DNA of 63,964 nt, filler included, from Bigelowiella natans CCMP2755 (lineage: Eukaryota > Protista > Cercozoa), in NCBI GenBank assembly GCA_000320545.1. It is 7 parts of 7 records of this genome, joined end to end, with 100 filler letters (N's around TTAATTAATTAA, not from the genome) between each part and the next. Parts side by side here need not be neighbours in the genome. Positions count along the whole stretch, not along the records: positions 4,682 to 31,938 come from ADNK01000633.1; 6 more parts are not named here. One strand, 5' to 3'. Both the position numbers and the translations under genes were made by a program. Shown in pieces: positions 142-29,932 of this stretch. The notes beneath the pieces were generated by a model. The model made no database searches, was not told the origin of the DNA, and saw only the letters and a program-made list of their open reading frames with translations. Numbering within the stretch: position 1 is the first letter of the stretch; the number at the start of each line of letters is the position of its first letter.

Positions 142-1429
142 TACAACATATTTACTAATCGATATTATTTGTAGTTGTGACTCATACAACGTAGGGATAA
201 TTTTAAATGTATGCGTGTAGAAATTACGCACATTCATCATTCGTATCGAGGCACAGCATTTATATCTCAATGAAATGAACAATGTATTAATCCATCGGAT
301 CTCGGTTTCATTATACATGCTATAGGTAGATTTACCTAAAATTTATCTGTGTGCAGCATGTATCTATCTCTTGTGTGCACAAAGCTAGAAAGGCTCATAG
401 GTGGGCATTTCTAGATTTGGCGCTCATACAACGCTAGAACGGCTAAGTTTGCATGATGTGCACACGTGTGTACAAACATCCATGTATGGTATGATCTAGC
501 ACCAGCTTTGAATTGCTACATGCAAGGTGCCAAAGAAACCGATGCAACACCGCCACATTCTAGCATTGCTCGCATTAGAGGCTGTGTGTGTGTGCACTGT
601 TCGGCTATCAAACGTATTCAAAATACGTGCATCCCGGAATTTATCAATCGCTATGTAATTATTAATGTTCCAGACTAACACACAACGCGTCCCCCCCGCA
701 ACATTGGGCATCTATGAGCACATACAATGATGAACTCAGTAGCTCACAGTGAGTTTTGTCATACATTTTTTTTATGATTCTCAAAACCCGGAAAAATACA
801 TGAAGTAACAGCTGCTCGCTGGATTTATCGCTCGGTTGATGTTACAATGTGCCCATTCACTGCGTTGCGCTTCTGCTACGATTCGTGGGACTCAGCTCAT
901 GGCGTCCAAATTCCCGTCATGTGCTCTGAGCACCCCTTGTCACAGAATCATTCAGTGAATACTGATTTCCCCATGTCGCTGGTGAAAAACATTCTACGTA
1001 TGACATGATTATTTATTTGTAAAATCCCCTACATATATCAAGAGCGGTAACGGCCCAACTGTGGAAATGGCTCATTGATCAGAGGAAATATAAGTCGCAA
1101 CCACTAACGGTCTTTCCAACAGTACCGACAAGACTTATGCGTTGACGCAGTCGTTTGAACCCCATCAAATCTTACTAAGACGAAGGAAATTCACTAAAAA
1201 TAGCTCCACTTGCAATGCGACTTGTGAGGGGTTTCGCGGAAACGCTCAAAACATCCGTGATCGGTAGGCGTTTGAATATAGTACGACAACCAATTTATCG
1301 TGACGTTCAACGATTATTCTGGCTATTTTGTGCTCGAGCTGTCTTCCACCCTGCCCTGTGCGAACGCCCGTTTTGAGGTTGATATAGCGCGTGACAAACC
1401 ACCCCCAATAACAAAGCAGTGCAAAGAAG

Positions 1430-2613
1430 ATGGGATCGTCTAAGAAGAATGCCGTAACGAAGGTCGCTTCAGCCAGCGTCAGCGACGCAAAGGTCGATAT
1501 CCTCATTTGGAACTTCAAAACGAGCTTATTCTTCACGCAACTTGCATTATTACTCTCTTCATGAGTCTAATTCAAACCTCATGGTGATATTTACTCCTTA
1601 TTGCAGAGACGCATTGAGAGGAAGAGACTCTTTGACTACAACGAAGGTAAACGTCTTTTCTCCTTTTTGGTACAAGCGGATGCGAAGAGTTAAAAATGCG
1701 TTGTTATCAGTTGGATTCGGCTGCTTGTCCCATGATTCCGCCATGTACGACTTGGGAGAGTACATCAAGGTCAGATCTCTGTTTAAATGACTTCCTTAGA
1801 TATATCCTTACAGGAGTTTGATGCTTAGGATGACTATTCAAGCACATTCTGCTGCTGCTGTACCTCGAAAAACACGGTAAGACTTAGCGATGAACTGTAG
1901 TGGTAACTATAGCTTTGACATTTTCTTTCGGCCTTCAGGAACTCATCCGTTCTGATGCTGTGGTCACCATCGCTTTCAACAAGGGAAAGTAAGTTGTTCA
2001 GGCAGATGATTGATAACTTGCAACTTCCATAAGATTGTTTAGAAAGACGACTAATTTTTTGGTTGAAATATATAACAGCTTATTGCTTAACTGCCTCAAA
2101 TTTGGATGCTGCTCGGTAGGAAATATAATGTTTTGCTCGCTTTTCAGAAATTTAATATGTTGTATTTGAACAGGCATGTTGCGCTGCTTGCTGCCCAGCT
2201 GCATGCAGTCTCCCTATGATTGTCGAGTGGAAATTGGAAGGGGGTTTCACAGCATACTCCATCATCTCGGAGGTATTTCTTAATATGAAACACGTTTTTT
2301 GCAAAGTCGGCTTCCTCCTCCTCCTCTCCTCTTCTTCCTATTCCCCTCTTGGAAAAAGTAGCGTCATGGATTCTAACTACTCTCTGAGGGTTTAGAATAG
2401 TTCGCCTTTTTTTGAAATTGCCCCCCCCCCCCTCTCTCTCTCTCTCCCTCTCTCTCTCTGTCCACCCTGTATTTGTACGCGTGCATGCGTGTGTGTGCAC
2501 TGATCCAACTGAAATTCGGTTTTTCTCAGCATGATGCAGAACGATTCGAGCTCTACTTCTACGAGAAATACAAGGAGAAGTTGCGCACTGCGAAGAAGAT
2601 TGCTATGGCATAA
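1430..2613 (+). CDS. Small Cys-rich hypothetical protein (~149 aa, 8 exons)
   Basis: Manual splicing of GT-AG introns with consistent phases gives MGSSKKNAVTK/RRIERKRLFDYNE/VGFGCLSHDSAMYDLGEYIK/DDYSSTFCCCCTSKNT/ELIRSDAVVTIAFNKGN/LLLNCLKFGCCS/ACCAACCPAACSLPMIVEWKLEGGFTAYSIISE/HDAERFELYFYEKYKEKLRTAKKIAMA*. Family not recognised. Confidence 0.65.
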
Positions 2614-2881
2614 GAAGGCTTTAATTAGCTGCCCCCTTGTATCTTCGAACATACTTCAAAGAACGTGAGTGGGGGTTGAGTCATATGATCTGCAATGATC
2701 ACCCATTTTGCTGGTTGCTTTTTGTTACCTATACCTCCCTTAAAAGCTAAACATATTAATCGATGGAAACCATACCCTAGTCTACTTTTAACACTGCTTC
2801 TTACCCTCTTAACCATGAGAGACACACACACACACACACGCTGGGTGGATTTATTAACGTGAGGCAAATTCCCGTTCCGCA

Positions 2882-2928
<47 letters not shown>

Positions 2929-3520
2929 ATATAAACAATATGATATGCATCGTACGTACTACGGCCGCAGCATAGCAGGATGCGTTTGACTTTTATGAAC
3001 AATAACGCGTCGTGCATGCCAAGCTAGTACTAGTACAAGCTCGGTGGGCATGGATCAATAAAGATGCAGCGTACATGTAGGGATAGATAGCAGGTCGTGC
3101 AATGATGGCCGGCCCACGCAGTGATATTTGACATGGACATCGAGACTGCGTATCGTACGATACGACATTTATATATCATGAGACGATTGCGTATAATGAA
3201 TTGATTTAACTTTTTCGATGGTCATTTCTGACATAGCTATATATAGCTATGCAATGTAGCGGCGTGCATTTATGTAAGACGAATGAGTAATTTATAAATT
3301 AGTCAGCAAAATTTGTTCAATGGCTATTCTTATATGTAGCTTTGTGTGCAATGCAGCGGTACAGCGGTACTTGCACTTAGCACTTCTTATGTGCGCACGG
3401 TGTGTGCTAACTATGATAATATTGGATCAGGGTTCGGGGTTCATCTATATATCATAGTGGAAGAATGACCGTCGTCGCACACGTACACGAGGCCGCTCTC
3501 GATACATATATAGCATGCTA

Positions 3521-4390
3521 CTACAGCCCTAGGTAGCCATTCTGCTCTCCATCATCAGTATTGTCATCATCATTTCTAGCATCGTCGCCCTGACGCAAGG
3601 CTTCTCCATCCGCCACCTCCTCCTCATCACCATCATCGTCTTCCAAGTCAATCTCCTCATTCAGCAGCGCGGCAGCTTCCTGTTCCTCAGCATCCATCTC
3701 CTTCTGCTCGCGCTCTCTCTTCGCCTTTTCGCGCTCACGGGCGGAGGCGATGAAGTCTTCCATTTTCTTTTCTGCCGCTCGGTTCTCTCTATCTTCAACC
3801 ATTTGGGCTCGGAGGATCGCTCGCGCCCTGTCCTCAGATATACGCATAACCTACGAGAGGGCAAGGGGAGGAGGGGGGGGGGGGGGGGAGGGGGTGGCAG
3901 AGATGCGTGGTCTGTCTGGAGATGATATGCTACGTAACATGTCGCTGAAAATGTGTAGTTATGAGCCAATGAAGAGGCAGCAGCCTTTCTCGAGGGCTTG
4001 CTTCAAACAAATGGGAGAAGTGCCGATGTAATATATCGTATCGCCGAGAAAAGCAGCCCGACTCCTTCCCCACCCCCCAAAGAATCAAAACACTACCTTT
4101 CGAACGCGGTTGTTCAGAGTATCCGCAACATAGATAACGCCCTCCTCTTCATTGACCGCAATGCCATATGGCCCATAGAACCGAGCAGATCTTCCCAAAC
4201 CTAGTAGGAACAAGTAGCGCACATTGCCGTTACTAGGAGGTAGTCATTTGAGTCGTTGGGCACGAATGAACGCAACAACTACAACAATAATAACTACAGC
4301 GATGGTGATGGTGATGATGATGATTGTATATCCGAAACACTACCGTCGCAAATCCCACCACTTCCACTTCCGGCAATCGTCGTCACCTTC
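3521..4390 (-). CDS. NHL-repeat protein, 3' fragment with acidic coiled-coil tail
   Basis: Spliced exons give VTTIAGSGSGGICDG/LGRSARFYGPYGIAVNEEEGVIYVADTLNNRVRK (typical NHL blade), then the ORF 3521-3847 acidic tail. The 5' part is lost at the gap 4582-4681. Confidence 0.75.
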
Positions 4391-4443
4391 ATTTATGTTC
4401 CGCGAGATTCAATTTATAACTCAAGAAAAGAGTGTGTGGGAGA

Positions 4444-4484
<41 letters not shown>

Positions 4485-4581
4485 GAAAAAAGTAAAGCAG
4501 CATATTATTGGTATCTCTTCATGCGTCCATTCAATAGACTATAAAATTAGAAGGTAGCTTTCACCCTCCTGCTGCATCTAT

Positions 4582-4681
4582 NNNNNNNNNNNNNNNNNNN
4601 NNNNNNNNNNNNNNNNNNNNNNNNNTTAATTAATTAANNNNNNNNNNNNNNNNNNNNNNNNNNNNNNNNNNNNNNNNNNNN
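4582..4681. other. Artificial assembly spacer N44-TTAATTAATTAA-N44
   Basis: 100-bp N block containing a linker with stops in all six frames. Confidence 0.97.
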
Positions 4682-4721
<40 letters not shown>

Positions 4722-4785
4722 TGCGTGTGTGTGTGTACTATTCTGAGCAAGAAACAACGGTAAATATAGGCAAGAAACATACACA

Positions 4786-12365: not shown

Positions 12366-15300
12366 TTATTGATTAAACATGACGTTGAGAGCAACTGGAA
12401 CAACTGTAGCTGTGAAAAAACCGTATGATATGGACCTTAGGATAGGCTCAGTAGTTTCGAACGTTTTAACCGCATATCTTCGAATTGAAGGTACCGCGTT
12501 GCATGCCATGGACAAGGAACTCGTCAAGACCCTCCGAATGATCCAACGCGCACATAGCTGTAATATGAACAAAACTATCACTCCGAACGCACCAACCATC
12601 AGCTTATTCGTAGTAAAAGCATCCGTGGCTGTTGAGGATGGGCGGATGGCTTTGGTACCCAACATGAAGGCGAACATCGCAGCCATATGAGAAGCGAGGT
12701 GCTGGTACATCTTGAGCGTGTACTTCAGTTCGCGGTCCGGCAACGGGCAAAAGCATAGCATTGCCAATCCGAACAAGAGAGGAGGGCATGTTAGATTCAT
12801 GTTGTCGCCGCTCAGCCAGGATAGCGTCGGTTCACAGAAGAACTGAATCATGACGTGAATTCCAATGGAGCCCGCTACCAGTCCACCGATTACGTTCGAC
12901 GGGGAGTCACCTCTTTGCATGCTACTGAAGCTGATCATCACCACCCATATCACTCCAGCTATCGCAATCGCAAGATTGTTGACTGTGAAAGCGTTATAGA
13001 GCCACGCCTGCCCAAAGAAATAGCGGAGTAGGAAGAACGGCAGCCCCACCGCGTTCATAGCGGTTATAGATGGCCATGAGTAAGCATCGTTCTTATTCTC
13101 GCTCATCACGCACTTGAGGATGCAGCCTGCTGAACAGAGGAGGCAGTAGAAAATGAATGGCAGAGCAGCGGACGAGGTGGCACCGAAGCACCAGAAGATG
13201 ACAGGAAGCAAGATGGAGTAGCTCTGGTGGGAACCAAGTACGCGCGTGAAAAAGAAAAAGGCACGCACGGATGGCGAGGTGGCGTTACGGTCCAAGCCTA
13301 ACATGTGGAGCCATCGGTCGACAAATCGAGAGGTTATTTCACTTTCGTGCTGCAAGAACCGCTTGTAAAGAGACAGGAATGCCCAGACTAGCATAAGTAG
13401 TGGCACACTAAAACCTCCATTACCCTCAGAGATAGCGCGATCTGTTTTGTACACGGTGACCTCATCTTCCATTGATTTGTCCCCTAGTTGCGCAGTTTTG
13501 GGGGAGGCCGGCTTTTGCGACAGAGGTGCAGCGGCAGCAGAACCCGTCTCTTCCTTAAGGTCCTTGCCCATGTTCGAAAGATCCGGGGTAGGATGCTGAA
13601 TCGTCTTCGTCGCCGCTTTATGGTTCGTGAGCACGCGAGTAGTCACAGACTTTAGAGTGGACAACGCGAATGAGACTTGTTTGTCTGAGAGCCCTGAGGA
13701 TGCACACACCCTAATCGCTGCGGGGAACTCGACGCCTTTTGGTCTGAAACCGATTGAGGGTCGGTTGTTGAACATGCTTATGGCCAATCCTTCTTTCTGG
13801 CACTCATGGCAGATCTTCTCCAGGATAGCTCGCGCCTCACACTTGCCTGACGCGGGGGCGCTCAAAGAAACACTCATCATTGGAGCTACTCTGGAGCCAC
13901 ATACCTCCAGGCCGGAAATTTGTTTAATACCGTCTCTGATTTGATTGGTGATTGTCTTCAGCCGCTCAAGGCGCTCCTTCCCTAGCTTCCTGATGGAAGC
14001 TAACGCAGCCGAGACAGAGGTAGCAAGGTAAGGGGGAGGGGCCGCTGAATAGCAATAGCCTGAGCCTAAGAGACGTTGGTAAGATACAACGCCTGTGGCG
14101 CCAGTCGCGAATCCGCAGCAGCTTGCCATTCCTTCCAGGGAGGCACAGATAACATCCACTTCCGTGGGTTTTAATCCAAAATGCTCCGTAGCACCCCGAC
14201 CAGAGGCCCCTAGGAGGCCGAAAGAGTGCGTTTCATCGAGGATGAAGCGGCAACGATACTTTGTACGCATAGCACATAGGCTCCGGAGAGGTGCTAACTT
14301 ACCCGTGCTACCAAACACGGCCTCGCTGATCAAAAAACAACGTTTAGGCTTGAACCCGCTACCCTTGATATTCCTCCACTCGTCCTCTGATAAGTCCCGA
14401 AGAACTCGCTCGCAATCGTTAGGATCACAGTGCTTATAGAAGCGCACTTCGGCACGGGAGAGCGAGATCCCAGTGAGTACATTGCGTCCGACACCTTCAT
14501 CAACGACGAGGACGTCACCTTTTCCAGCCATGCAGGAGATGACGGAACTAACAGTACATGCACCGAAAGGGTAAAGGACTGCCTGTTCCGTCTCCAAGAA
14601 GGCAGCTAGGTCACGCTCGGCTTGAAGATGCTCAGGATATGTTCCATAGAAGCCGCGGGGGCCGCAACTTCCTAGACCTTTTTGATCAAGAGTACGGATG
14701 CAGGCGGCCTGGATGGAGGGATTGTTGGCGAAACCGTGATAGTCCCAACTAGAGATATTGGCTTTGATCGAAGTGGACGAGTTGATTTTTCGGTCATACC
14801 ATCCAAACACAGGCTTACCATCATCATTTTCTCCTGCGACAAGTGGGGCCCACCTAGTTGTTTTGAGGGTGGCAAGGGCATCCTTGCGGCCCTTCTTCGC
14901 TCTCTCCTGTCGCTGCTTCTTTTCCAGTGAAAATTTGTGTTCCAGCGAGTCAAGAGTTCCTGGGAAACGAAGATTTGGGGCGTGTACTGTGCGATAACGT
15001 AACTTAAGCTCGTCAGCAATATCCTCGATCTTGAGCAATGCGTCCTCAAGATCGGCTTGGGAATGCGCCGCCGAGATGCAGAAGCGCACGCGTCCGTACA
15101 TCAAAGGCACGGCTGGCGCGCCCACAGTTACTACAGCTAGGTTGCGGCGGAACGCCAGGCGTGAGAAATCGCCAATTTTAGACGGAGTGTAGAGCATTAC
15201 CGGGATGACTGGAGATGGTGCATCCCCTAAAACCTCTAGACCCATCTCCTCCAAACGTCGCCGAAAGAATATGGAATTGTGGCGAATAGCTTTAAGTCGC

Positions 15301-17117
15301 CTTTGCCCAATATCAGTGCCATCAGCCCCACGAATCAGCTGATGTGAAGAATTATTCTGAATTAGGGTATTGCTCCCAAGATAACCTCGAAGTCATAATA
15401 TCAAAAGAAATGAGTTTTGATTTTCCACCTTGAGAGCCTCAATAATCTGCACCGTACAAGCCGGGGGGAGGGGACATGCATCTGTGCATCCGGCCGCATA
15501 TTTTCTGACATGATTGACCTGTTACCACCATTCGCATGTAAGAGACTGGAGGGCATTGAACACTCACATTCACATTCAGGTATAAAAATTAAAATGAGAA
15601 ACAACATCGATGATGGCTGTTCCTCACAGCCACCGTTACTCACTAGCTTCTTATCTCCGGCAATGTATCCCCCAGAACTCCCGAAGGACTTGGAGAAAGT
15701 GCCCATCATTATATCGATCTGCTTGGTGTCGATTCCGAGTTCCTCCGTAACACCGCGACCTGAGGGACCTATGGCACCGATGGAATGTGCCTCGTCCAGA
15801 TAAATGTAGGCACCGTACTGTTTTGCGACAGGGACGATTTCCTTCAAATTGCAGAGATCACCTTCCATGCTATAGATGCCTGGTTATTTAAATCAATTCT
15901 ATCATGCCAGCTAGCTGCAATCTCTCCATCATGATGTTTTACCTTCGATAACTAGAAGAATCTTGTTGTACTTTCCGGATTTAACTGCCTCTTGTAGTAC
16001 GAGTTCAAGATCTGCAGCGTCATTATGGCAAAACGGTTTGATTTTTGCACCTGACTCACGAGCTCCCTGTTCGAAGAATAAATAGCATTAAGGACGAGTA
16101 GCATTCTTGCTGAACAGTCTCAGTTCAGGTAATCCAGAAATAGTGCAGCATGTACTCTTACCTGCACAATGGAGGTGTGGTTGAGCTGGTCAGAGATAAT
16201 CAGGTCACCTTTACCAACGAGCGCAGGCAATACTGTGGAGTTGGTCGCGAATCCCATACCAATCACCATGCTATCCTCTTTGCCAAGAAAATTTGCCAAC
16301 TGGGTCTGTAATAAAAACGTAGTCTGTGTTCAGCACTGAAAAAATTCGGATACTCTTCGCCACCTTCTTACCTCAAGCTGGTGATGAATAGGGTGGTAAC
16401 CAAGCTCCACTGAGGGTGATCCTGTGCTCAAAGGATATTTTGTGACCGCGTCACGCAGTGTCCGCTTCGAGCCTGGATACTTATCAACCCCACCGAAACC
16501 GAGATAATTGTACGATCCGAGATTTAGGCATCGCTTTACCTTGTCCGTCAAGCGAAGGGGAGCCAGAAACCCCTGATGGTGCAAGTTATTCGCCATGAAT
16601 GATATAGACTATTCGCATTCGATTATCTACCACAAGATGAAGGAGGAGATGATACCTTGTATGAAGGATCTTTCTCTCGAATAATACAATCTATCCAATC
16701 TGCAGGCTCAGATGAAATTGGTCTGTTGAAAGTGTCTTCGATTAACCCATAGAGCACCCGAATGTATAATCCCTTTTCCGAACGAAATAAGGCAGGCAGG
16801 CCTTTTTTTTCACCATCAGGATCGCTCGTCCGGAAGTCAGGAACACCTCGAACAACATTAAGGGCGTTTTTCGCAAGGCCTTGAATGGTCTGACCACAAA
16901 GCATCTATCATTCTTGGATTCTTCGTGACTTCTAGATGACAATGGAGAAAAGTTGACAGAAATTCGCGAACGAAATCAAAACAGTCGAAAGATGGGGAAG
17001 TTAAAACAATGACAGGTTACATACGAAAAGGCCCCATTGGCATGAGGAGCAGGCAGTGTGTCCGGTGATGGCCGGGAGCCAAGAGCCTCCATACGGTTGG
17101 TATGAGTCGTAGTCCAT
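12366..17117 (-). CDS. SPT: Single-chain serine palmitoyltransferase: LCB2-LCB1 fusion with C-terminal PAP2/S1P-phosphatase-like membrane domain (8 exons, ~1300 aa)
   Basis: LCB2 motifs: [51 protein letters not shown] (PLP Lys), [13 protein letters not shown]1 motifs: [32 protein letters not shown] (no Lys), [10 protein letters not shown]. Then an SGPP/Lcb3-like multi-TM domain. Seven phase-consistent GT-AG introns lie between ~15341 and ~17024; the last exon (~12366-15340) is a single open frame. Confidence 0.93.
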
Positions 17118-18385: not shown

Positions 18386-19216
18386 ATGATTCCCTTTCAG
18401 CTCTTCGGCGGCCGAGCAACACCGCAAGTGGCGCGAAAAAAACGCCGGACGTGGGTGCACAACAAGAGACAGAAAATTGAGGTCTCTGCAAGCCTCGCTT
18501 GGAGCCATAACAACGCCAACGGCACTATCAACAAGAGAGACTTACGAAGCTCCCGATCCTTCTCCGAAGTTAATACTCCTACAGACACTAGTATATCCCC
18601 CTTCAATCATCCTTCGCTCTCGTCGTATTCAAGGATGAAAACGCCACCATCGAATCGTCCAACGAGCACCTGGTTGAACCAACGAGGATTATCGACCGTC
18701 AATATTGACGGAACTAAAAGCGAAACTGAAAAGAGCAGATCGCATATTCGGGAACATGAGGAAGCCATTATCAAGAGGCCTAGCAGGAAACTCAGAAGGA
18801 TACAAGATTGTGCTTTTGCTCCCACCTCACCACCCCTGTTCTCCAAACAGACAAAATATGGGTCTCAGGCAACGAAAAAAAGACTCGATGACAAGTATTC
18901 AGATTGCAAAGGGATGAAGAATAGACTTTGGCAAATTGGCAATTCTATCGTTGAGGGCGCTCGGCTAGACGAAATTGAAGAGTTGGTGGAGAATCGCCAT
19001 ATTGCACAGATAGCTCTCAGCTTTCAAAAATATGTTGAACAAAAAAAAATAAAGTCTGAAAAGCAACGTATTGCAGTCCGAGAATTCTTTGAACGTCATG
19101 GAATACATCTCCCCGATGATGAAATTGATGAGGTAAGTAAGTGTGTTAGGATCGGTAATACTCAAATACAGCGACTTCGAAGAGTGGCATTGAGACTTGC
19201 CGAGCTCCTTAAATGA
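18386..19216 (+). CDS. Hypothetical protein (276-aa ORF, basic Ser-rich N-terminus, helical C-terminus)
   Basis: Long non-repetitive ORF divergent from SPT; no family recognised; a possible splice donor near 19133. Confidence 0.5.
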   Translation: MIPFQLFGGRATPQVARKKRRTWVHNKRQKIEVSASLAWSHNNANGTINKRDLRSSRSFSEVNTPTDTSISPFNHPSLSSYSRMKTPPSNRPTSTWLNQRGLSTVNIDGTKSETEKSRSHIREHEEAIIKRPSRKLRRIQDCAFAPTSPPLFSKQTKYGSQATKKRLDDKYSDCKGMKNRLWQIGNSIVEGARLDEIEELVENRHIAQIALSFQKYVEQKKIKSEKQRIAVREFFERHGIHLPDDEIDEVSKCVRIGNTQIQRLRRVALRLAELLK

Positions 19217-20030: not shown

Positions 20031-26449
<6,419 letters not shown>

Positions 26450-28782: not shown

Positions 28783-29932
28783 TATACATGCACACACACG
28801 TATGCTTGCACTTCGTGTGTAAATGCGTGTTTGACAACGCAGGTGCCCCTTCTTCTTCGTGCAGGAGAGGCCACCGGCGTGAAGATCGCCTTCCATATCG
28901 AGCCATATAAAGGCCGAGATGCCTCCTCTGTGGCAAGCGACATTCGATATATAGTTGACATGTACGGAGGCTCACCAGCGTTTTATCGATCTGCTACGCA
29001 CGGAGACAGACCCGTTGTGTACGTGTACGATTCCTACCACACCCCCGCGCACGAGTGGGCGCGTGTCTTGTCCCCCAGCGGGATTGACACGATTCGGGGG
29101 GGGCGGTACGATGCGGTGGTGCTTGCACTGTGGGTGCGGGGAGAGCAGCCACAGTCGAACAGCGGCATTGAGGATTTTTTCGTCGCATCTCACTTTGATG
29201 GAGCGTATACCTACTTCGCCGGTGAGGCAGTAAGTAGGTTCAGGAAGAATATCACCGATGATGACGTTTGAAACACTCTCCCCATTCTCCATCACCGTTT
29301 CTTGAATCATCCCCATTATCACAATAATCATCATCATCATCATCAACAACAACAACAACAACGGTAGTTATCAATGATCAGGTTCTCGTTTTGCATGGGC
29401 CTCCAACCCAGGAAATTGGAGAGCTCTGCGTGAGACAACGCAACGGAGAAACCTTCTTTTCTGCCCTTCTGTTGGCCCAGGCTACATCGACACGAGGGTG
29501 CGGCCCTGGAATGGCGGCAATACTATCAGTCGCAGGGGGGGGCAGCACTACGATCAGGTATTTGGAAGCGCGCTCGCAGCGAGCCCTGACTTTATCTCGG
29601 TCACGTCCTTTAACGAGTGGCACGAGGGCACCCAGATTGAGCCCGCAACATGTATCGATGACATCGACGACTCTGTAGCAGTAGCAGCAGCGGCAGCGGC
29701 GGACGATGCCATGGATAAAGCCACCGCTGATAACAATCAAGGAGTAAGGAGGAGAAGCAGCAGCAGCCAAACGCCTTATTCGCCACAGCAGCAGCACTCC
29801 AGGTGGAGCGCCTTGTTGCCCAAATATCAGGACTACGGGCAGCTCTCACCACATTACTATCTAGATAGAACGAGGCATTGGGCCAGGCGTTTCGAGGGTG
29901 ATGATCGCGCTGCTACATTGCCTTCGTATTAG
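26984..29932 (+). CDS. MANEA: Glycoprotein endo-alpha-1,2-mannosidase (GH99)
   Basis: HVFYYPWYG, QHWNH, IGANFYPILGPYSS, VVSWYPPG, FHIEPYKGR, VYVYDSY, DGAYTYFA, ISVTSFNEWHEGTQIEPA (catalytic ExxE). N-terminal signal-anchor MAMRAAKFFY/GFLVAGGAFFLAQWALFLF; the start codon is inferred. Confidence 0.93.

Follow-up and report, generated by a model that had tools for sequence, protein, structure and literature searches.

A single-chain serine palmitoyltransferase gene of Bigelowiella natans with a PAP2-derived C-terminal membrane domain

The chlorarachniophyte Bigelowiella natans has a real, expressed gene that encodes serine palmitoyltransferase (SPT) as one long protein, in which an LCB2 half is followed by an LCB1 half and then by a PAP2-derived membrane domain. 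SPT is the committed, tightly regulated sphingolipid step; animals, plants, and fungi have it as a membrane complex of several subunits. The gene lies in a window of 63,964 nucleotides (the whole stretch of B. natans CCMP2755 DNA that was analysed, filler included), in the part that comes from ADNK01000633.1, a contig of B. natans nuclear origin and not human, and all features described below are on the minus strand. Altogether, we consider it likely that the protein is a single-chain SPT whose dead PAP2-derived domain does not act as a phosphatase, but anchors or scaffolds the enzyme and may also bind and sense lipids. Here, we describe the gene and its three domains, and then their relatives and the putative working of the protein.

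Gene structure and expression

The gene occupies positions 12366..17117 from start to stop codon and consists of eight exons and seven GT-AG introns, yielding a 1364-aa product. Exon bounds were obtained by exact peptide matching, with the splice solved junction by junction. By translation, the reading frame opens with an ATG at 17117-17115, four codons downstream of an in-frame stop, and ends with the stop codon at 12368-12366. Exon 1 (17025..17117) encodes aa 1-31, and exon 6 (15644..15879) contains the PLP-lysine motif; exons 2 (16656..16889), 3 (16372..16572), 4 (16162..16305), 5 (15943..16066), and 7 (15429..15518) are each defined by a peptide match and a GT-AG splice solution. The introns measure 63-135 nt, and all seven fall within the LCB2 half. 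Exon 8 (12369..15338; 2970 nt) is a single open frame for aa 375-1364, covering the end of LCB2, a linker, LCB1, a second linker, and the PAP2-like domain. Both the LCB2-LCB1 junction and the junction between LCB1 and the membrane domain lie inside this exon, with no stop codon.

The gene has already been modelled and annotated in public data. Protein P0115 (JGI Bigna1 52830, 1364 aa), which is also an MMETSP transcript product, is identical to the gene product and matches the window at 100% in eight pieces. Thus, LCB2 and LCB1 share a single ORF and a single transcript, in which LCB2 comes before LCB1. The sequence-only reading had proposed a single LCB2-LCB1-PAP2-like polypeptide without an intron at the LCB2-LCB1 junction, and had argued that the fusion was not a splicing or gap artefact; the continuous exon 8 and the transcript products that span the domains agree with it on each point. 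It had also named separate transcripts, or a stop between domains, among the outcomes that would count against it, and neither was seen.

The opposing possibility is that the fusion is an artefact of annotation or assembly and that the domains are separate genes or transcripts. Against it stand the stop-free exon across both junctions and the recurrence of the same full-length product in the JGI model and in assemblies made independently of it (MMETSP and metatranscriptome). The same architecture is also present in other chlorarachniophytes and in Mamiellales, where the genes lie on long contigs and seem to be free of introns. We found no evidence in favor of an artefact: even the shortest transcript product (P0001), which begins at an internal Met, covers all three domains. 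We give this explanation almost no credence.

The two SPT halves

The LCB2 catalytic half (aa 28-491; 14988..17036, introns included) is most similar to LCB2/SPTLC2 among the alpha-oxoamine synthases: it matches Arabidopsis LCB2a (AtLCB2a) over aa 28-491 (E 6e-129) and residues 78-541 of human SPTLC2 (E 1e-117). Pfam PF00155 (class I/II aminotransferase fold) is matched by both halves of the protein. The GTFSKSFG motif with its PLP lysine, which the sequence-only reading had placed in this half, is indeed translated at 15703-15680, and the PLP-binding lysine K329 (codon 15689..15691) is invariant across 31 homologs. In the same set, H219, D294, and H297 are conserved at ≥90%, and little or no variation is seen in the DEAH region and at further LCB2 active-site positions; along with the lysine, this half thus has the conserved His and Asp residues that contact PLP.

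The LCB1 half (aa 567-944; 13629..14762) corresponds to residues 101-472 of human SPTLC1 (E 1e-69), and LCB1/SPTLC1 is its best similarity; for both halves, chance can be dismissed as the source of such matches. An 11-residue LCB1 motif already picked out from the sequence is found at 14672-14640 by translation. The SLEG that had been described as lacking the lysine is translated at 14141-14130, where it aligns to NMEN of SPTLC1, and there is no Lys at the PLP position.

Both PLP-fold halves are clear orthologs of the subunits of heteromeric SPT (human SPTLC1/SPTLC2/ssSPT/ORMDL3, Arabidopsis LCB1/LCB2a, yeast Lcb1/Lcb2/Tsc3/Orm), in which the Lys is likewise found only in the LCB2 half. However, the heteromeric enzyme has two chains, while the B. 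natans protein has one. The matches to human SPT begin at SPTLC2 residue 78 and SPTLC1 residue 101, and the helix-bearing N-terminal regions, including the N-terminal membrane helix of SPTLC1, are missing from the B. natans protein. Linker 1 (aa 492-566; 14763..14987) is charged and poorly conserved and has no hydrophobic segment, and linker 2 (aa 945-1015; 13416..13628) is of low complexity and predicted to be disordered. Hydrophobic segments are confined to aa 1013-1364, with none earlier in the protein. Because all of them are there, the C-terminal domain is most likely the membrane anchor.

We also considered targeting to the plastid or periplastid compartment and rejected it: both B. natans paralogs (see below) share a conserved Met-Asp-Tyr N-terminus with no signal-like hydrophobic stretch.

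Descent of the C-terminal domain from PAP2 enzymes

The third domain (aa 1016-1364; 12369..13415) holds all predicted transmembrane segments and is PAP2-derived, as both its fold and its profile homology place it in the PAP2 superfamily (PF01569). The AF2 model of the domain has a pLDDT of 83.2 and a pTM of 0.81. In a Foldseek search of this model against the PDB, the top seven matches were all PAP2 enzymes, each with a probability of 1.0, and the next ones were <0.2; the top matches include human G6PC1 (E 4.5e-4, TM 0.5-0.56), B. subtilis PgpB, and LpxE. An HMM of the domain found 202 proteins at E<=1e-3, with the best PAP2 proteins down to 1e-31; many of the 202 stand alone and are 350-470 aa long. 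When 20 of these finds were scanned, 20 matched Pfam PAP2 (19 above threshold, E 1e-13 to 1e-22, and P0164 below). Furthermore, hhalign aligned the domain profile to stand-alone PAP2 proteins over 339 columns (probability 99.9%, E 1e-33). The "PAP2-like" label given from the sequence alone was therefore well chosen.

Direct Pfam/NCBIfam scans of the membrane domain returned nothing significant (Pfam PAP2 E=2.9, below threshold), the closest ortholog reached 24.2 bits against Pfam PAP2 (cut-off 27.2), and the domain profile found only a chance match among PDB sequences. A word-index search with the same profile gave only four short matches, probably fragments of fusion genes.

G6PC1 (a 9-TM PAP2 enzyme; PDB 9jtm, 9j7v), the best structural match, has the same nine-helix layout, but it is only 11-13% identical to the B. 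natans domain and is an active enzyme with its His nucleophile present. The stand-alone eukaryotic PAP2 phosphatases (350-470 aa; among them P0165, P0167 from Lapot gusevi, P0171, and P0242 from Paradermamoeba) show homology along almost the entire nine-helix domain and share Trp/Phe-Pro-Ser, Asn-Ala, Ser-Pro, and Gly-Gly with it. By their motifs, these relatives are presumably of the sphingoid-base-phosphate phosphatase type (LCB3/SGPP). They carry the full K/RP/PSxH/R/H/D set, which is invariant among them, whereas the B. natans domain has just K and PS.

Loss of the PAP2 catalytic residues

The remnants of the three PAP2 motifs can be located in the C-terminal domain. In vestigial C1 (13113..13115), the lysine K1116 is all that is left of K-x6-R-P, the Arg-Pro being gone. 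Vestigial C2 (13068..13076) retains Trp-Pro-Ser at residues 1129-1131, but P-S-G-H is broken by the change of the catalytic His to Thr; across the clade, this position is Thr, Ala, Ser, or Gly. In vestigial C3 (aa 1180-1193; 12882..12923), S-R-x5-H-x3-D is no longer found: the Arg is Ser, the nucleophile His is Asp with a one-residue deletion, and the Asp is Asn, while Gly-Gly at residues 1192-1193 is retained. PAP2 catalytic residues are needed for the phospho-histidine mechanism (PMC7564803). Because C1 has lost its Arg-Pro, C2 its His, and C3 its Arg, His, and Asp, the C-terminal domain is, as judged from its residues, a pseudo-phosphatase. The view of the PAP2 domain as an enzyme module thus has to be given up, with nearly all PAP2 catalytic residues lost. 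There is a precedent in PLPP7/NET39, where PAP2 folds have been kept after losing critical catalytic residues (PMC7564803); however, these are free-standing, unfused animal proteins, and we found no specific relationship between them and the B. natans domain.

A bifunctional chain, in which SPT is joined to an active lipid phosphatase (e.g. for LCB-1-phosphate), would be in keeping with the established PAP2 fold and descent and with the weak Pfam PAP2 signal of the closest ortholog. It is very unlikely, given that the residues lost from this copy are both invariant in the stand-alone relatives and required by the phospho-histidine mechanism, and given the Pfam E value of the domain itself. As a conserved acidic residue occupies the place of the former nucleophile His, a non-canonical activity is at least conceivable.

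The pseudo-phosphatase domain is most conserved around its dead active site: the vestigial C1-C3 region scores 0.62, vs 0.46-0.54 for the rest of the domain and 0.32-0.43 for the linkers, and Lys, Trp-Pro-Ser, Asn-Ala, and Gly-Gly are invariant in it. In all examined SPT-linked PAP2 domains, which come from several lineages, the nucleophile His is missing and the surrounding motif is kept. This strong conservation points to a maintained function and argues for more than a passive anchor.

Distribution, phylogeny, and the viral enzymes

The B. natans genome encodes two tri-domain paralogs (the second is P0007), as does Lotharella, and the architecture is also found in Mamiellales, Cymbomonas, and several other plankton lineages. 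Homologous metagenomic clusters have up to 546 members, and some have >100. The architecture is common in small marine green algae, and the B. natans gene is interesting but not unique. The sequence-only reading had seen a self-contained SPT in one more protist lineage and had cautioned that a very wide distribution would lower its novelty; the caution was justified, and the idea of an isolated oddity does not survive the paralog in the same genome and the design shared with other plankton. None of the papers covered by a literature search connects SPT to a PAP2 domain or reports a tri-domain SPT.

The clade of the B. natans gene groups with green algae (SH-aLRT 99-100), and the green algal and chlorarachniophyte clades are reciprocal sisters. 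The retrieved stand-alone matches of 530-700 aa are LCB1-type, and the tree set contains no stand-alone LCB2. The trees of the LCB2 half, the LCB1 half, and the PAP2 domain are congruent, which indicates that the three parts evolve as one unit.

The two-domain SPTs (coccolithovirus-type, and Entamoeba at about 880 aa) have the same LCB2-LCB1 order and are 30-35% identical over aa 61-950. However, they end after LCB1 with no PAP2-like domain, and they fall on separate long branches. The activity of the single-chain SPT of EhV was reportedly published by Han et al. in 2006. Our set includes two coccolithovirus-type ORFs (870 aa on L010 and 875 aa on L009), which are about 35% identical to the B. 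natans protein. In the core tree and in both half-trees, they group with P0166, a tri-domain protein from a contig with 65% GC (SH-aLRT 99 for the core, 99 for the LCB1 half, and 80 for the LCB2 half). The GC content and the grouping with the virus are all that suggests the "haptophyte-like" label for P0166.

If coccolithoviruses had obtained their single-chain SPT from something near the B. natans gene, the shared domain order and the 35% identity would be expected, but the viral ORFs side with P0166 while the B. natans clade sides with the green algae, each with the SH-aLRT values given above. This origin is highly improbable. Instead, the coccolithovirus-type enzyme seems to go back to a tri-domain gene of a lineage other than that of B. 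natans, with the PAP2 domain shed. The separate domain phylogenies called for by the sequence-only reading thus gave congruent halves and PAP2 domains, and placed the viruses away from the chlorarachniophytes; the hope that this gene would inform on the origin of the viral enzyme was hardly borne out, since the coccolithovirus-like SPTs group with P0166, away from the chlorarachniophyte/green clade.

Proposed working of the protein

In the single-chain SPT that we favor, the LCB2 half (with PLP Lys329) and the LCB1 half would fold as an intramolecular counterpart of the LCB1/LCB2 heterodimer. By homology, this unit would condense serine and acyl-CoA at the cytosolic face of the ER, and we infer SPT activity (3-ketosphinganine formation) from the conserved residues. 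As the canonical LCB1/LCB2 membrane helices are missing, the C-terminal domain (~350 aa, nine helices) would attach the enzyme to the membrane instead, connected to the LCB1 half by a putatively disordered tether of ~70 aa. The domain descends from a eukaryotic family of stand-alone PAP2 lipid phosphatases. With the residues for PAP2 chemistry lost, it would serve for anchoring or scaffolding, and might also sense lipids by binding them. That the enzyme sits at the ER, and that the domain anchors or regulates it, are inferences too. An AF2 model of LCB1 with the PAP2-like domain had a pTM of 0.43, a linker pLDDT of about 26, and no confident domain packing; because of this, a defined scaffold interface is unsupported.

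The C-terminal domain might go further and be a built-in regulator, which would still bind sphingoid-base phosphate or a related lipid, sense the products of the pathway, and adjust SPT activity in the place of ORM/ORMDL. This reading is an extension of the anchor model and is compatible with an anchoring role. It would explain why the vestigial active site, with its invariant residues, is the most conserved region of the domain, and why the motif flanking the lost His was kept in all examined SPT-linked PAP2 domains. It also fits the closest stand-alone relatives, which are active PAP2 enzymes with motifs that seem to resemble those of sphingoid-base-phosphate phosphatases. On the other hand, AF2 does not predict contacts of the domain with LCB1 with any confidence, a long, disordered tether separates the two, and the substrate-coordinating C1 and C3 Arg are also gone from this copy, which weakens phosphate binding. 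We therefore hold a built-in regulator to be possible but rather doubtful. A broader version is an ancient fusion of SPT with a sphingoid-base-phosphate-type PAP2, which lost catalysis and then persisted in chlorarachniophytes, prasinophytes, and other plankton as an integral lipid-sensing regulatory and anchoring module, replacing the membrane helices and perhaps an ORM-type regulator. We regard this version as unlikely; if true, it would represent a natural self-regulating one-chain SPT, as well as a "Rosetta stone" that ties the first step of sphingolipid synthesis to the recycling step.

In all, ecologically abundant picoplankton use a natural one-chain SPT with its own membrane domain, which raises the question of how SPT is anchored and controlled once the usual helices are gone. 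The compactness of such an enzyme suits it to structural and biochemical study, and the pseudo-enzyme nature of its appended, conserved PAP2 domain offers a lead that can be tested. The trees also bring the viral enzyme into clearer view, as the coccolithovirus-type SPT would belong to another lineage and has seemingly lost the PAP2 domain.

Gene structure and product

A eukaryotic gene on the minus strand fills positions 12366-17117 of the window. The ORF listing gave a 962-aa open frame at 12366-15254 with shorter coding pieces upstream of it, and a search with this exon by reference returned the MMETSP transcript product P0001, which is 100% identical to it. Cluster look-up of P0001 led to the full-length protein P0115 (1364 aa; JGI Bigna1/52830; EukProt Bigelowiella_natans_P010266), which the window matches exactly in eight pieces. 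These hits assign the DNA around the gene to the nuclear genome of the chlorarachniophyte Bigelowiella natans, not to human DNA. Splice sites were determined by solving GT-AG junction by junction and comparing the exons with P0115 in a local script; single exons were the queries for exon searches and the database protein P0115 for full-length searches. Based on the P0115 match and GT-AG, the minus-strand exons are exon 1 (17117-17025), exon 2 (16889-16656), exon 3 (16572-16372), exon 4 (16305-16162), exon 5 (16066-15943), exon 6 (15879-15644), exon 7 (15518-15429), and exon 8, the last (15338-12369; 2970 nt). Introns are 63-135 nt long, and an in-frame stop lies four codons 5' of the ATG. Every intron falls within the LCB2 half, and the last exon (2970 nt) spans both domain junctions, which confirms the proposal of the sequence-only reading that no intron separates the fused domains; its motifs were also recovered by translation, offset by a few bases at most.

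The same cluster holds a near-identical JGI protein, P0117, which is probably an allele or from another strain. The 16 residues at which it differs from P0115 spare the LCB2 core (aa 1-475) and the LCB1 core (567-944); they are residues 476 and 486 at the LCB2 end, 527 and 559 in linker 1, five positions in linker 2, and a further seven in the PAP2-like domain.

Elsewhere in the window, an ORF piece at 28831-29268 (+) resembles glycosyl hydrolase family 99 (endo-alpha-mannosidase type; E 3e-33) and is probably one exon of a neighbouring gene. None of nine larger ORFs near the gene (18386-19216 (+) and eight of 130-220 aa) matched Pfam; introns probably break up the neighbouring genes. Microsatellites with dinucleotide and trinucleotide units are common throughout, and a TG-rich 37-nt tandem array (24078-24354; 7.5 copies, 96% match), in a microsatellite-rich stretch, accounts for a spike in GC-skew and AT-skew at 23.7-24.7 kb.

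Serine palmitoyltransferase halves

Residues 28-491 of P0115 align with residues 78-541 of human SPTLC2 (E 1e-117) and with Arabidopsis LCB2a (E 6e-129), and residues 567-944 with residues 101-472 of human SPTLC1 (E 1e-69). Across 31 aligned full-length homologs, K329, the PLP lysine, never varies, and the LCB2 active-site columns around it vary little or not at all. In the LCB1 half, Ser-Leu-Glu-Gly aligns to the Lys-less Asn-Met-Glu-Asn of SPTLC1. The N-terminal parts of SPTLC1 and SPTLC2 ahead of the matched regions have no counterpart in P0115, and a hydropathy scan found no membrane-grade segment before residue 1013, buried PLP-fold strands aside.

A PAP2-derived third domain

The third domain was not recognised by Pfam or NCBIfam (Pfam PAP2 E=2.9). 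We describe it from A2, in which it is aligned with eight orthologous domains that were extracted, by DNA reference, from loci in transcripts and metagenomes. The AlphaFold2 model on A2 is all-helical and confident (pLDDT 83.2, pTM 0.81), and its seven best Foldseek matches in the PDB are all PAP2-superfamily enzymes with a probability of 1.0 each (five entries of human G6PC1 at TM 0.49-0.56, Bacillus subtilis PgpB, and Aquifex LpxE); later matches have probabilities <0.2. Searched against 1.84 billion representatives, the A2 HMM matched 202 proteins at E<=1e-3, including fused SPTs and many stand-alone eukaryotic proteins of 350-470 aa that aligned over nearly the whole profile. All 20 matches scanned hit Pfam PAP2, 19 of them above threshold (E 1e-13 to 1e-22), with the degenerate, partial P0164 slightly under it. 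In a profile-profile comparison, the fused domains matched 19 stand-alone PAP2 proteins with a probability of 99.9% (E 1e-33, 339 columns), and Pfam PAP2 matches the nearest ortholog of the window domain at 24.2 bits, again in the same register. Because of these fold matches and this profile homology, the earlier label "PAP2-like" is established by both fold and descent. By motif, the stand-alone relatives probably resemble sphingoid-base-phosphate phosphatases (LCB3/SGPP).

The stand-alone relatives share an invariant PAP2 set: C1 Lys and Arg-Pro, C2 Pro-Ser-x-His, and C3 Arg, His, and Asp. In PAP2 enzymes, the C3 His acts as nucleophile and becomes the phospho-histidine, cleavage of the phosphate bond falls to the C2 His, and the substrate is held by three residues, Lys and Arg of C1 and Arg of C3 (PMC7564803). 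MAFFT and hhalign alignments agree that the clade of P0115 (the window clade) retains no more of this set than the C1 Lys and, preceded by Trp, the Pro-Ser of C2. Nothing remains of the C1 Arg-Pro; Thr, Ala, Ser, or Gly stands in for the C2 His; Asp or Glu occupies the C3 His position, beside a deletion of one residue; and Asn usually takes the place of the C3 Asp. In the window copy, the C3 Arg is missing as well. PLPP7/NET39 is a precedent for a PAP2 protein that has no catalytic activity (PMC7564803).

The SPT-linked PAP2 domains of P0350, P0166, P0289, P0363, and P0040 are less decayed than those of the window clade, and P0166, P0181 (representative of P0350's cluster), P0289, and P0325 (representative of P0363's cluster) pass the Pfam PAP2 threshold. 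In all less-decayed domains examined, the C3 nucleophile His is absent, with Ser, Thr, or Cys in its place. In a maximum likelihood tree, one weakly supported branch (74/79.9) splits all 18 SPT-linked domains from 17 stand-alone proteins. This fits a single fusion after which catalysis was lost early. The dead active-site region is the most conserved part of the third domain, with a majority-residue frequency of 0.62 versus 0.46-0.54 in the remaining domain and 0.32-0.43 in the linkers.

Three metagenomic proteins (P0289, P0325, and P0363; 794-899 aa) have one aminotransferase domain and a Pfam-passing PAP2 domain in which the C1 Arg-Pro is retained and both His are gone. These may represent LCB1-PAP2 genes that lack LCB2, or truncated gene calls.

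Distribution and phylogeny

Outside the window, B. natans encodes a second tri-domain paralog, P0007 (Bigna1 84787; 1363 aa; L004:134-4228), which shares 39% identity with P0115 over exon 8 by BLASTP and 47% in the full-length alignment. Two paralogs are likewise present in Lotharella globosa, and the duplication is older than the divergence of these chlorarachniophytes. Homologs with full coverage are known from Mamiellales (Ostreococcus-type, ~1416 aa, on long contigs and apparently intron-free), Cymbomonas, and several metagenomic lineages, and some homolog clusters have >100 member sequences, up to 546. On the Mamiellales loci L005, L006, and L007, conserved neighbours are PIG-S and acyl-CoA oxidase upstream, and PAP_fibrillin, amine oxidase, thiamine pyrophosphokinase, and Mago nashi downstream.

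Trees of the PAP2 domain, the LCB2-LCB1 core, and each half all agree, and thus the three domains evolve as a unit. Each of the two chlorarachniophyte paralog groups includes one further relative (P0010 or P0009), and together the groups make up a clade whose sister is a clade of green algae (union supported 99-100). Since these two clades are reciprocal sisters, the direction of any transfer, e.g., from the green endosymbiont, cannot be read from the trees. Two-domain proteins of Entamoeba form a separate long branch.

A scan of viral contigs yielded two giant-virus loci of low GC (38%) with LCB2-LCB1 ORFs of 870 and 875 aa that stop after LCB1. The sequence-only reading had proposed separate phylogenies of each domain and expected the fusion to be informative for the origin of the viral enzyme. 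The viral ORFs group with tri-domain P0166 (SH-aLRT 99 in the core, 99 in the LCB1-half, and 80 in the LCB2-half trees), away from the window clade. Among the cellular proteins of this analysis, P0166, on a contig of 65% GC (L012), is most closely related to the viral SPTs. Its gene call (1221 aa; 1068-4733) is preceded by a 256-aa call (164-934) with a faint aminotransferase match, and the true gene probably extends further and is interrupted by an intron or frameshift. A giant-virus MAG contig (L011; GC 34.5%) carries a 636-aa ORF at 2767-4677 that has just one alpha-oxoamine-synthase domain, shares 30% identity with the LCB2 half, and differs in kind from the fused viral SPTs on L009 and L010.

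Proposed organization of the enzyme

The window gene had been modelled and transcribed in public data, with relatives annotated as serine palmitoyltransferase; fused LCB2-LCB1 enzymes are already known, and an Aminotran_1_2 plus PAP2 architecture is Pfam-visible in some lineages. The PAP2 pseudo-enzyme that holds all membrane segments in the chlorarachniophyte/prasinophyte clade appears to be undescribed in the literature searched.

The best-supported reading is that P0115 is a single-chain SPT. Its two PLP-fold halves would form an active heterodimer-like unit on the cytosolic side, linked by a disordered tether of ~70 aa to the C-terminal PAP2-derived pseudo-phosphatase, which would be its sole membrane attachment. 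The pseudo-phosphatase may serve purely as an anchor, or it may in addition bind a lipid and regulate the enzyme. AlphaFold2 modelling of LCB1 with the third domain gave no confident packing (pTM 0.43). Given a cytosolic N-terminus, the helix order of the third-domain model suggests that the vestigial C1-C3 loops are lumenal, as in canonical PAP2. That the dead site is conserved speaks for contact with some ligand or partner.
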